Source of the DNA: Amoeboaphelidium protococcarum X5
Taxonomy: Eukaryota > Fungi > Aphelidiomycota
Direction of reading: 5' to 3'
NCBI GenBank assembly: GCA_023515725.1
Contig: JALDTO010000157.1
Location: 1 to 9,917, forward strand
Length of the DNA stretch: 9,917 nt
How positions within the stretch are numbered: position 1 is the stretch's first letter; every line of letters begins with the position of its first letter. The translations under genes were made by a program, and so were the position numbers. This document shows positions 1 to 4,132 of this stretch, piece after piece. Below the pieces are notes generated by a model. It did no database searches. It was not told the DNA's origin and saw nothing but the letters and a program-made list of their open reading frames with translations.

Positions 1-92
1 TATTGCGCGTTGCATTATCATCTTCGTCCACGGAATGCACCGGCACGCTGAACTTCAAACAATCAGACAATAAAATGCTCTTATTGTTAAAA

Positions 93-107
93 GTGCAAAG
101 TGCAAAA
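93..107 (+). repeat. GTGCAAAGTGCAAAA, left copy of an imperfect direct repeat flanking the YR ORF
   Basis: Matches 2761-2775 (GTGCAAGGTGCAAAA) at 14 of 15 nt in the same orientation. Confidence 0.5.
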
Positions 108-279
108 ACGGAAACCGTTAAGGTTGACGTTGGAAGAATGCGCGAGCGATCGAGCGCGCGACGGTGATCTCGCAGAAAACAGACAAGTCAGTTGTTTCAA
201 ACAAATCCTCAATGATTTTGCATTAAACTTTTTGTATTAAATCCACTTTCAATCTCAGTCTCCATATTATCTGTCTTGT

Positions 280-2712
280 TCAAATACTACACTCATCCAT
301 GGTACCAGAGCAATTGTTTGTCTTGAAGCTAGTTGGTTTGAAGTTCCCCCAATGTGCGATGAACTTATCCAAATCACCGCCAAAGTGCTTTCTCAGACAT
401 TTCATGATCGGGCAGTATTGCTTCACGTAGAATGATTTGGCGCCAGCTGATAACCCGACGGTTGAGCCAGGATCATCCACTGCAAGAATGGCCTCCAACT
501 TCGCCATGGCAGTCTTCGCTTTTCTCACTTTCTCTCTCCCAGGCATATCATTCACAACTTCATCCTACTGAACAGCTGTGATGGCAGGTACAACATCAGC
601 TACGTCAGTGTCTTCTTCATCGGATTCATAGAGTTCATCATCAGAGTGAACCGCAGCTTGTTCACGTAACTATCTGGAAGAAGATTATTGAGAAGTCAGA
701 GTAGATTTTGGCTACTTCAACTTAGCTGATTGAGTGGCAGCAATCAATCCATTCGCATAAAGCTCAAGCATCCTACGCAGCTCATTAATCTCCTCCGGAG
801 TGGCATTAGGTGCAATTTCTTTCAACTTTGCCTCAATAAGCTGCAGCACAGTCTCTTTCTTCTGCAACTGGAGAAGTGCATCGTAAATCACTCTAGGTCC
901 ACCAACTGCATCAACATCAGATAATCCACATAAGCTACGAACAATCTCTTGACTCACCTGCTGCAGACAAAAATTGCCTCTAGAATGGGCAGCATTCAGA
1001 CTGCGAGCCATCTATAGCTACTCACAGTAGGCTGATCTGAATTTGCTTACCACGGAAGACACGTCCAAACGTCTAGTCTTCGCTAATTCTAGCAAATAGC
1101 TAGCATCCTTCTTATACAATGCGGCATTAGCGGACGAAGCGTGTCGCGCACTCTTAGTGATGTCAATCTCTGATCCCATTCCCCAAACAGCAAGCAAATA
1201 GCCAGTCTTCCTACTAGTGTGCGTACCAAATTTACCATCGGGATTGCCGGTAGCAATCTTACAAGCTTTCTGATACTGCCTATGATAAGATACGTAAGAG
1301 ATGTTGTACGCCGCATGCCCAACTTGCTTCACAGCATCCAGTGTACTCTCTTGAGGGAACAAGAATCCAGTTCTAATCCCAGAAATAAAAATCCACGTCA
1401 AAAGCGCACGAACCGGGCACAATTCGGGCACATCATAATCCGTCCAAAGAGTCAAGCACACTCTAACACGATCAGACTTGCCTTTAATGTAGAAAGCAAG
1501 GGAAGATATACTGCCATCACTTTGAAAGGTCGCAAGATCCTTGTTGAGACAATTTTCCAGCCTAGGATCATGAATTTTCAAATCGGTGACTTCATCATTG
1601 CGCAGAAATAGCTTGATACTAACGATAATCATCGTCCACATCATGAATGACTTCGCATCATTTTTCGAGATGAAATACTCGCGGAGACGTAGTAATTCCC
1701 AAGGTGTGAGCGGCTAGCTGCCTTCGGACACGTAGCTGCATCCATCGCGGGAGTTCAATCTCTACATGTTAGTCATGAGGGAAGAATTCTTTGGATCTCC
1801 ACCCAGCCAAATACGAGGAGCCATCGGATGGAACCGACAGCCAGATCTATCACCACGCTCAGAACGTTGGATGCACTCTTCGCAGATATCTCTGTACTCC
1901 CCCCTCTAATTACGACTATCATGCAGCACAGAGACAGCCGATAACAACTGGTCAACATTCTGTGGCATATTCCAACCACCCTAGCACTTGATATCGTGCC
2001 CATAGACACATTTCACAGCGTTGCCATTCTCGTCTTTTAGCAAAGAACCCTTCTCATTACGCTTGAACTTGATAAACAAAATGATGCTCTTGGCGTTCAT
2101 TGACGGTGTGTACTGCGGGGGGTTAGGAAGCAGCATTAAACTCGAGCTGTAGTCACCAATTAGCGCAAAAAAGTACCGCAATCCTCTGTAATGCTTCTAG
2201 TAGGCTTACATACTATTCACAGCCAAAGGCCTACCGCCAGTGAGTGGCACAGATACGTCGGATCGAGTCAACCTCAGCAGCTTCAACGTCTCTCCAATGC
2301 CTTCATCCAGCTTATACTTGTACGCCGCTTCAATGCGATACACATGGCTGTTCTCCGACTTCTTGCGTCTCTTCACCTTCTTCGCCAACTGCTCATCATC
2401 CAGACCATCATCAGAGTCGTAATCGTCGTCGTCATCTTCATCTTCATTCTCCAGCTACCTATTGAAAGCAGCACTGACTTGAGCAGAACTTTGTGAAGTG
2501 ATATCAGCAGTTTGATTCATGCTAACAACACTTGTTTCAGCCTCGCACCCAGCCAGACCAGAACTTGAGGAGGCGGATACGCCGACACTACTGCCAACAC
2601 CAGCACACTCATCAACGGCTGGGATGCCAGTACTACTGTTGGAGGTGGTGATACCCCCTCCAGATGGCTACGAGTCACTCTACACTGCTCTAGAACGCTT
2701 CCTGCCAGACAT
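280..2712 (-). CDS. Tyrosine recombinase (phage-integrase fold) protein, Crypton-like, about 810 aa, intronless under the TAR=Gln code
   Basis: Track ORFs 2206-2388, 1981-2181, 1018-1644, 712-1011 and 280-555 all share one minus-strand frame. They are separated only by TAG/TAA (15 in total) and there is no in-frame TGA between ATG 2712 (MSGRKRSR) and TGA 282-280. YR motifs: LFLR-NDE (R at 1602), IKGKSD (K), LCPVRAL, GTHTSRKTG (H 1221, R 1212), ARH...ALY (H 1143, Y 1116). An alternative in-frame ATG lies at 2838. Confidence 0.9.
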
Positions 2713-2760
2713 GCGAGACGGTCGAGATTGTAACAAAGCGAGTTCGGTGCGTTTCTCCGG

Positions 2761-2791
2761 GTGCAAGGTGCAAAACACTACCGGTGCAAAA
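2761..2791 (+). repeat. Three GTGCAA units (2761, 2768, 2784), right copy of the flanking repeat, inside the divergent YR/FIST intergenic region
   Basis: Sequence gtgcaaggtgcaaaacactaccggtgcaaaa is seen directly. Confidence 0.5.
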
Positions 2792-2860
2792 GAAAACAAG
2801 CGTTTTATTTGTTTTAAAAGAGTCAGATACAATAGCATACAATTTGTACAATTTTCGGCT

Positions 2861-4132
2861 ATGGCAAATAGGTTGACTAGATCATTGTAATGGCCAAAGT
2901 GCTCCGATATTAAATACGTATCATAGGAATTAAATTTATTGTTAAAGGGGATCAGTGGCCATCAAGTAGTTTCCGCAGCATACATTTACGTCAGCCCGCG
3001 ATCACCTAATAACGACAATCTTTTAGATTACAGTCGGAGATTGGGGACTTCCGTTACCGAAACTTTACGTAGAAGCTTACAATATGATGTGCCGTTGGTT
3101 GGCGGTTGTGTTGATAATTTATTGATTCAAAGTTAAGTTCCAAGTCATCTGTATCAGGCTAATGGTGTTGGTATTTGTCTAGTGACGGCAGAACGTGATA
3201 TCGCTGATGGGAAGTAATCTGCATTCCATCGCAAGTTTGACTCGCCCCAAAAGGAATTAGTTAGAGTTGGAAGATTTGGATCTCATAATAGCAATAATGG
3301 GGAGTCATCTCACTCTGGTTGGAGTCGCGTTCTTGAAAAGTACAATTAAATGAAAGCTCCATCTGAAGAACATAAATCATCTGAGTTTACGGGTGTCCAG
3401 TCCTTACATGCAATTGGCCCTCATTCACAGCTGAATGCCTTGTGTTAATTGTTAAAGTGCTCACCCAATGTTTTACATAGCTCTGGTATCACGTCAATGC
3501 AAACACGTTTCCTTACGGGAACTGAAACTGTCCTGGTTGCTAATGACCAAGTTTACACTGATGGAGTTGTTGGTATTTGCTCTAAATTATAAGCATTAAG
3601 CCCATAGATTAAACTTCCTTGGCTCTGTAATGTCTCTCGGTAGTTTTAGATAACCAAACGCACGGGAAACATGATCATTGAATTGGACAACGAGCCAGCG
3701 GTGTCCGTAGTTTAACAACTAACGTTGAATTCTTAGTTCCCTGTGGTCGCTCTTTTGCCTGATTTAAATCAATTACCAATATAAGTGGTAGGCGGAGATT
3801 CAGGGCGTGGGGTTTTAGGACTTAAAGTTCACGATCCTTCTATACTGAATAACTGCACAACGTTACAGTTTGCGTAGATTGGTAGCGAAATTTAGACTTC
3901 CGATGATCTGAATGATAACGATGGTTTTCTTGTTTCTAGCAAAGGTGAAATCCCGTTTATAACTGACGATAAACGCGATGATTATCAATTTGTCGGTGCC
4001 ATGTCTGCCTCAAGTGTAATGAGTTCTATCATCATAGAAAAGAAGCCCACTGATCAAGATGAATCGTAAAGCGCGTCGTCGAAACACATCCTGATCGATT
4101 CTCCCGGCACAATCTTGAATCTTTCGCAGTGA
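2861..4132 (+). CDS. FIST-domain-containing protein (fungal type), about 423 aa
   Basis: Open from ATG 2861 to TGA 4130-4132 with 16 in-frame TAA/TAG and no TGA. Motifs VPLVGGCVD, TRFLTG..VLVANDQVYTDGVVG, ITKRTGNMIIELDNEPA and VVGGDSGRGVL resemble FIST N/C domain signatures (recognised from memory, not searched). Confidence 0.75.

Follow-up and report, generated by a model that had tools for sequence, protein, structure and literature searches.

A multicopy, apparently recently mobile Crypton-type transposon of Amoeboaphelidium protococcarum whose recombinase gene is invisible under the standard genetic code

The first 9,917 bp of contig JALDTO010000157.1 of the aphelid Amoeboaphelidium protococcarum X5 (GenBank assembly GCA_023515725.1; forward strand, hereafter the window, with position 1 its first base) hold genes for a proteasome alpha subunit, SUI1, ribosomal L2 and a lysine methyltransferase and, on the minus strand at 74–2830, a complete 2757-bp element whose single open reading frame (ORF) encodes an 810-residue tyrosine recombinase. 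With high confidence we assign this element to an autonomous Crypton-type DNA transposon that has been active very recently, of which it is one copy. Cryptons, in the sense of Goodwin (2003) and Kojima and Jurka (2011), are eukaryotic DNA transposons that encode a tyrosine recombinase, and they are among the least studied of eukaryotic transposons. We found no biochemical study of any Crypton recombinase in the literature, and direct observation of Crypton activity is limited to Chlamydomonas (PMC9977147).

The recombinase gene occupies 280–2712 on the minus strand, where translation yields 811 codons, namely 810 followed by a terminal TGA at 280–282. The frame is interrupted by 15 standard stops (13 TAG and two TAA) with no internal TGA, and in the list of ORFs of the window it appears as five fragments of at least 50 residues (280–555, 712–1011, 1018–1644, 1981–2181 and 2206–2388). 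An earlier note on this DNA, drawn up from the letters alone, had joined these fragments into one gene concealed by a code in which TAA and TAG (TAR) specify glutamine. Both points are borne out by the translation, in which the internal stops are all TAR, and by the proteasome alpha subunit, SUI1, L2 and methyltransferase genes, which likewise require TAR to be sense; an annotation made under the standard code would leave the recombinase gene invisible. Because TGA accounts for ~2% of codons in the remaining frames of this window, a TGA-free run of 810 codons would arise by chance with a probability of ~1e-8, and the frame is not random. Of the 11 TAR positions of the recombinase that can be aligned, three have glutamine as the commonest residue in relatives, and with all 15 TAR codons read as Gln the protein is colinear with its relatives. 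The reference-based searches described below used separate stop-free pieces of the protein, and the Gln-translated whole was used only in local scripts.

Every part of the layout described in the earlier note, from basic N-terminus to C-terminal domain, can be located in the translated protein. The motif GRKRSR (residues 3–8) precedes a Ser/Gly-rich stretch and, at residues ~89–118, an acidic tract followed by KKVKRRKK; this N-terminus is disordered and carries motifs resembling nuclear localization signals. A CxxC-x11-CxxH motif (C277, C280, C292 and H295; 1828–1884, minus strand) lies in the N-terminal, core-binding half of the recombinase, and the catalytic domain piece (residues 334–564; 1021–1713, minus strand) holds R371, K412, H498, R501, H524 and Y533. 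A helical region then leads to a second acidic linker (residues ~690–715) and to a C-terminal domain of 94 residues (717–810; 283–564, minus strand). Alignment with 64 full-length relatives bears out the complete R-K-HxxR-H-Y set proposed earlier, its columns being invariant or at least 90% conserved, and the 810-residue protein thereby shows the R-K-H-R-H/W-Y catalytic signature expected of a Crypton recombinase. Each of the four CCCH residues is at least 90% conserved in the same relatives, a pattern that suggests metal binding; in the C-terminal piece (numbered from its own start), C56 is invariant and H60 at least 90% conserved, and terminal cysteines are conserved as well.

Pfam searches with nine stop-free pieces of the recombinase returned nothing significant, the C-terminal piece matched no Pfam family, GCR1_C included, at E ≤ 1, and a profile search of PDB sequences gave chance matches only. 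A model of relative P0003, based on the 64-sequence alignment, has a mean predicted local distance difference test score (pLDDT) of 86.8, and among PDB structures Cre of phage P1 ranked first (Foldseek E = 7.5e-6), followed by lambda Int, XerH, Tn1549 Int, Flp and topoisomerase IB. Residues 83–479 of the model superpose on Cre 19–327 with Z = 17.8 and a root-mean-square deviation of 3.5 Å, covering both domains and 287 of 319 residues. The integrase-like fold on which the earlier proposal depended is thus found in the modelled relative, and the catalytic residues are the same as those of Cre. Unlike Cre, with which identity is 11–12%, the protein has a 140-residue disordered N-terminus, the CCCH insertion and ~270 additional C-terminal residues, and the target described below is degenerate, not a 34-bp lox site. 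The C-terminal 94 residues of the window protein itself are predicted to adopt a helical fold (pLDDT 92) without a convincing match among PDB folds (best Foldseek E = 6.2; best VIA Z = 3.7). From its disordered N-terminus, the protein would on these models continue into a two-domain Cre-like recombinase that bears the CCCH motif, then into a helical region, and end in a C-terminal Cys/His domain specific to the family.

The ends of the element were placed where identity is lost among 19 full-length copies, defining a unit 5'-GTATCTGACTC...AATAAGAGCATT-3' that starts with GTAT, finishes with CATT and contains one ORF only, flanked by non-coding ends of 118 bp at the 5' side (2713–2830, minus strand) and 206 bp at the 3' side (74–279, minus strand). 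No reverse transcriptase, RNase H or other Pfam domain was found on the pieces of the protein, and the 2757-bp unit has no terminal inverted repeat and no long, inverted or split terminal repeats; the lack of a reverse transcriptase and of long or inverted terminal repeats is a Crypton trait. GCR1_C, DUF3435 (PF11917) and DUF3504 (PF12012) have no match in the protein pieces or in the 64 relatives, in line with the earlier note, which had recognised no reverse transcriptase, GCR1_C or DUF3435.

These boundaries bear directly on the remaining classes of eukaryotic element with a tyrosine recombinase, from which one might suppose the gene to be a fragment of a DIRS/Ngaro-type retrotransposon or a part of a Starship-like cargo element extending beyond the window. 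Both ends of the unit lie inside the window, 2757 bp apart and with one ORF between them, which also excludes the reverse transcriptase ORF to the left of the window that would have undone the earlier proposal. Neither the reverse transcriptase, RNase H and inverted or split direct terminal repeats of DIRS, Ngaro and VIPER elements, nor the DUF3435 captain and cargo of a Starship, nor the DUF3504-type recombinase of CryptonA and CryptonI was found. We reject the fragment readings on the unit boundaries and give them virtually no credence. The element does resemble Starship captains (DUF3435) and CryptonA/DUF3504 proteins as a eukaryotic tyrosine recombinase moving DNA into short, near-matching targets (PMC13465315); a Starship measures tens to hundreds of kilobases, whereas this unit has 2.76 kb, one gene and no cargo.

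We searched the assembly (23.6 Mb in 346 contigs) for further copies. The catalytic piece recurs at 100% identity in 21 places, and a search with the whole element as DNA recovered 19 full copies and two partial ones, one with an altered 5' end (C192) and one cut by a contig end (C203). Another 11 contig ends stop 69–74 bp inside the element, and counting of junctions indicates ~26 copies in the genome, which answers the question of genomic copies left by the earlier note. The 18 copies that were aligned vary at a single site, position 2656 (minus strand), a synonymous change in Gly19 (GGT/GGG) where the G of the window is the minority base; four other copies match the window copy at 100% identity, and 14 differ from it by one base. 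Because the copies are near-identical, we conclude that their spread was very recent. The C192 copy (C192:414872–418564) is without the first 20–29 bases of the element and has partly similar, rearranged sequence in their place.

Alignment of 25 left and 25 right junctions yielded the target consensus R-T-A-W-N4-T-T^D-T-A-Y, with T favoured at +5. At the left junctions, R and A are found in 25 of 25 cases, T between them in 24 and W in 23, and after the N4 spacer the two T positions hold in 24 and 25, respectively; at the right junctions, +1 is never C, the T, A and Y positions are without exception (25/25 each), and +5 is T in 18 of 25. In the window, the 5' half of the target (2831–2840, minus strand) consists of G-T-A (2840–2838), five variable bases and TT (2832–2831) abutting GTAT, and the 3' half (70–73, minus strand) is TTAT, a case of D-T-A-Y, abutting ...GAGCATT. 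TTGTAT at the 5' junction is paired with TTDTAY at the 3' junction, the two matching perfectly in four copies, so the short (4–6 bp) terminal direct repeat reflects target microhomology and not a target-site duplication, as in Cryptons. The 50 bp beside the junctions are AT-rich (33–35% GC compared with 39% further out).

Reconstruction of the unoccupied target succeeded in three cases. In one, the element has entered a short host repeat between TGTATT and TTATCC, and paralogs of this repeat without the insertion read ...GATATTGTATTTTATCC...; in the other two, the empty site is a homeolog, namely C155 for the C298 contig end and C207 for the 5' flank of the window copy itself. At all three, the joined flanks equal the empty site in length, showing that insertion causes neither duplication nor loss of target sequence. 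The C155 and C207 homeologs, 85–91% identical and both empty, are the unoccupied homologous sequences for which the earlier note had suggested looking, and since they are empty, the insertions must be younger than the divergence of the duplicated genome halves; an identity of ~91–93% has been reported for the duplicated gene sets of A. protococcarum.

The earlier note had left two options, a poorly described tyrosine recombinase transposon family or a domesticated host recombinase sitting among housekeeping genes. An intact ORF flanked by proteasome, SUI1, L2 and methyltransferase genes is what the second would predict, whereas a domesticated gene is not expected to occur ~26 times in near-identical form at unrelated sites, with defined ends and empty homeologous sites. 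On copy number and empty sites we reject domestication, whose probability we consider negligible, and keep the first option, that of a Crypton-like transposon, for which the single-ORF unit and the Cre-like fold of the relative also speak.

The ends of the element carry a further organized feature. Three direct TTGCAC motifs lie in the 5' end (2761–2766, 2768–2773 and 2784–2789) and two in the 3' end (93–98 and 100–105), where the pair forms the 15-nt repeat TTTTGCACTTTGCAC; the 15-nt repeat of the 5' end, TTTTGCACCTTGCAC, lies within its TTGCAC cluster (repeat D7). Each element end thus has a 15-nt direct repeat TTTTGCACYTTGCAC, with a third TTGCAC at the 5' end. Across the window, TTGCAC occurs seven times against 6.2 expected and is not above chance; only its clustering at the ends is notable, five of the seven sites falling within 70 bp of an element end and all on one strand.

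Within the Cryptons, we compared the element with CryptonF, the group of fungal and oomycete Cryptons to which the active CryptonF-1_cRei of Chlamydomonas also belongs and of which the same genome carries a canonical representative in at least 10 identical copies. This CryptonF, which is also young given its identical copies, has significant matches to NDC10_II and GCR1_C (86 bits for GCR1_C) and served as positive control for the detection of both. The window protein has no GCR1_C and no NDC10_II, the latter taken as a proxy for the Ndc10-type recombinase of CryptonF; among the 64 relatives, five match NDC10_II, below the cut-off only. The family profile scores just 4 bits against the genome's CryptonF, yet the two are in register at the catalytic motifs. 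The element therefore does not nest within CryptonF, the outcome that would have made it a member of a well-described family. It shares with CryptonF the organization of a single-ORF tyrosine recombinase DNA transposon of ~3 kb without terminal inverted repeats or a true target-site duplication, as well as gene-proximal insertion, the window copy lying 30 bp upstream of a start codon (ATG at 2861) and oriented away from that gene. As in CryptonF-1_cRei of Chlamydomonas, which ends in CACCG and targets CAYCG (PMC9977147), the terminus is near-identical to the target (TTGTAT and TTDTAY here). Short terminal direct repeats of Cryptons reflect target microhomology, and the 6-bp terminal repeats of some CryptonF elements, such as CAGTAT and TTGRTA (PMC3212892), resemble those of the window element in flavour. 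In contrast to CryptonF, the family of the window element has an extra CCCH motif, a different C-terminal domain without GCR1_C, and a recombinase that NDC10_II does not recognise.

With the catalytic piece as phmmer query, 1.8 billion cluster representatives yielded 700 relatives, the best 44% identical, so that the family comprises at least 700 of them. Those with a species name come mostly from chytrids (Zopfochytrium, Blyttiomyces, Quaeritorhiza, Phlyctochytrium, Terramyces, Rhizoclosmatium, Chytridium and Boothiomyces), the others from A. protococcarum and Plasmodiophora, and many further relatives lie on metagenome contigs of 2.3–4 kb. Residues 141–808 are colinear with relatives of 690–750 residues (37% identity, E = 1e-142), and the A1 profile scores 653 bits against the 810-residue protein; a word-based protein search with the family alignment gave only nine matches, and the 208-residue fragment that the standard code leaves of this ORF had no exact match on record among public assemblies. 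The host genome also contains a paralogous recombinase family, 35% identical, with one intact copy (C264:1093693–1095996) that is 95% identical to A. protococcarum MP228_004128 at NCBI. In a FastTree phylogeny of all 82 rows spanning the profile core, from which near-duplicate cluster members had been removed beforehand, the three aphelid lineages form a weakly supported group (SH-like 90) that adjoins chytrid sequences, a placement that fits long residence in the lineage.

We found no description of this lineage, but the possibility that it belongs to the described group CryptonS deserves real weight, even if we think it the less likely case. CryptonS elements, known from oomycetes and a diatom, have no GCR1_C, a conserved C-terminal region, lengths of 2.8–3.9 kb and 5–6-bp terminal direct repeats (PMC3212892), and by this description the window element is similar in length and terminal direct repeats, and has a C-terminal region conserved within its own family; moreover, the unnamed ESM-Atlas clusters nearest to a chytrid relative by language-model features are mostly from Oomycota and diatoms, which we treat as a lead only. 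Against membership stand the termini, TATGG or TTACTG in CryptonS versus TTGTAT here, and the hosts: those known for CryptonS are stramenopiles, whereas the named matches include chytrids, the aphelid and Plasmodiophora and no oomycete or diatom protein. With the catalytic region of the Plasmodiophora relative as query, 21 matches were obtained, none of them from oomycetes.

For the movement of this Crypton-type element we follow the Goodwin model, which agrees with the data and under which it would be excised as a circle with the junction ...GAGCATT|GTATCTG.... The recombinase, perhaps placed by the subterminal 15-nt repeats and with a possible role for its C-terminal domain, would join the TTGTAT of the circle junction to a genomic RTAW-N4-TTDTAY, and recombination between circle and target would produce an insertion without duplication. 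The junctions have a fixed polarity: the 5' junction always carries the GTAT of the element and the 3' junction always the DTAY of the target, including its two variable positions, such that GTAT is found at 25 of 25 left junctions and 21 of 25 right junctions differ from it. Two staggered exchanges across a mismatched 6-bp overlap would be expected to give both polarities after replication, and the fixed polarity would favour cleavage and exchange of one strand pair beside the shared TT. Such an intermediate might be resolved by replication or by host enzymes or factors, which would also let the copy number rise.

Since this mechanism includes a circle, and the small element has no coding capacity beyond an integrase-like protein, it could in principle be mainly an integrating episome, comparable to a small circular plasmid or virus that bears an integrase, instead of a chromosomal transposon. 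We consider this very unlikely: every copy seen is integrated, at distinct chromosomal sites; the search with the whole element as DNA met only such copies and contig ends, with the circle junction on no contig; and a replication gene is lacking. A more ambitious proposal is that the element represents an undescribed aphelid/chytrid Crypton superfamily, defined by a Cre-like recombinase with CCCH insertion and a C-terminal Cys/His domain unmatched among PDB folds, that is live today and moves by exchange of one strand pair beside a 2-bp TT homology, followed by replicative resolution. Taken jointly, these claims are speculative and in our judgement rather improbable; if true, they would describe a tyrosine recombinase pathway by which copies multiply and for which a degenerate 14-bp target suffices.

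Several observations weigh against our interpretation. No circular form, excision or new insertion was observed, and recent activity is deduced from copy identity. The full-length model belongs to a relative with 37% identity; of the window protein, only the C-terminal piece was folded. The polarity from which exchange of one strand pair is argued could be mimicked by biased mismatch repair. Finally, flank joins in the assembly contradict homeolog synteny, such that the pairing of left and right flanks on contigs is untrustworthy. Window 1–73 equals the last 73 bp of contig C298, and the overlap between the two contigs is 76 bp, which is what a k = 77 graph would leave. By homeolog synteny, the flank at window 1–73 belongs with the end of C94 and not with window 2831 onward, whose counterpart is the sequence 3' of the C98 copy (C98:756338–760030); the two flanks of the window are not syntenic partners. 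Copies L003 and L009, whose flanks may be swapped, share two halves of one host-repeat site, and the left flank of the C179 copy has no homeolog. Mispaired flanks could be either assembly paths through identical 2.76-kb repeats or real recombinase-mediated rearrangements, as documented for CryptonF-1_cRei (PMC9977147). Junction sequences are local and are unaffected by the mispairing.

A compact, intact element in ~26 near-identical copies, with base-resolved ends and a clear, degenerate target, would make a practical system for the circle-and-integrate model and for the question of how a tyrosine recombinase transposon gains copies, and it adds, in the genome of an algal parasite, to a transposon class that has been little studied and in which apparently live examples are rare. 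There are consequences for genome work as well. The identical 2.76-kb repeats confuse assembly, that of the window's own contig included, and recombinases of relatives have been fused into host gene models. In Quaeritorhiza P0024, a recombinase relative is joined to a class II tRNA-synthetase-like protein named ribosomal L39, and in Phlyctochytrium P0033 to a major facilitator superfamily transporter; both fusions probably reflect insertions that misled the annotation.

The gene next to the window copy (2861–4132, plus strand) has a start codon that is conserved in the C207 homeolog, and the two pieces of it that were tested gave no Pfam match. An open-frame test of gene-proximal insertion was uninformative, given that only TGA stops frames here.

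Further observations concern the surroundings and relatives of the element. A dispersed short host repeat, ...TGTAAGAATTAATAAAATGTTAGTATCAGTAAGATATTGTATTTTATCCTCAAAGGTGAAGAGATATCACCTTTGAGATC..., with a hairpin, has received at least three insertions of the element, at two positions separated by 5 bp, and may be of the miniature inverted-repeat transposable element type. A run of N lies just upstream of the intact C264 paralog, and decayed relics of the recombinase superfamily are present at C135:20806–21322 and C179:505019–505993. One CryptonF copy of the genome, at C146:496368–498458 (L051 3369–5459, plus strand), shows a GRW...Y motif and is adjoined by a 753-codon ORF (L051 1006–3267, minus strand) that, judged by its motifs, resembles a BED-finger hAT transposase. 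No element boundary could be read from two TARA/JGI contigs that carry a distant relative, since they are 98% identical throughout their overlap. On two marine metagenome contigs, L052 (2874–3359) and L053 (3177–3662), both on the minus strand, a conserved 161-residue gene follows downstream of a 908-residue relative and could be a second gene of that element.

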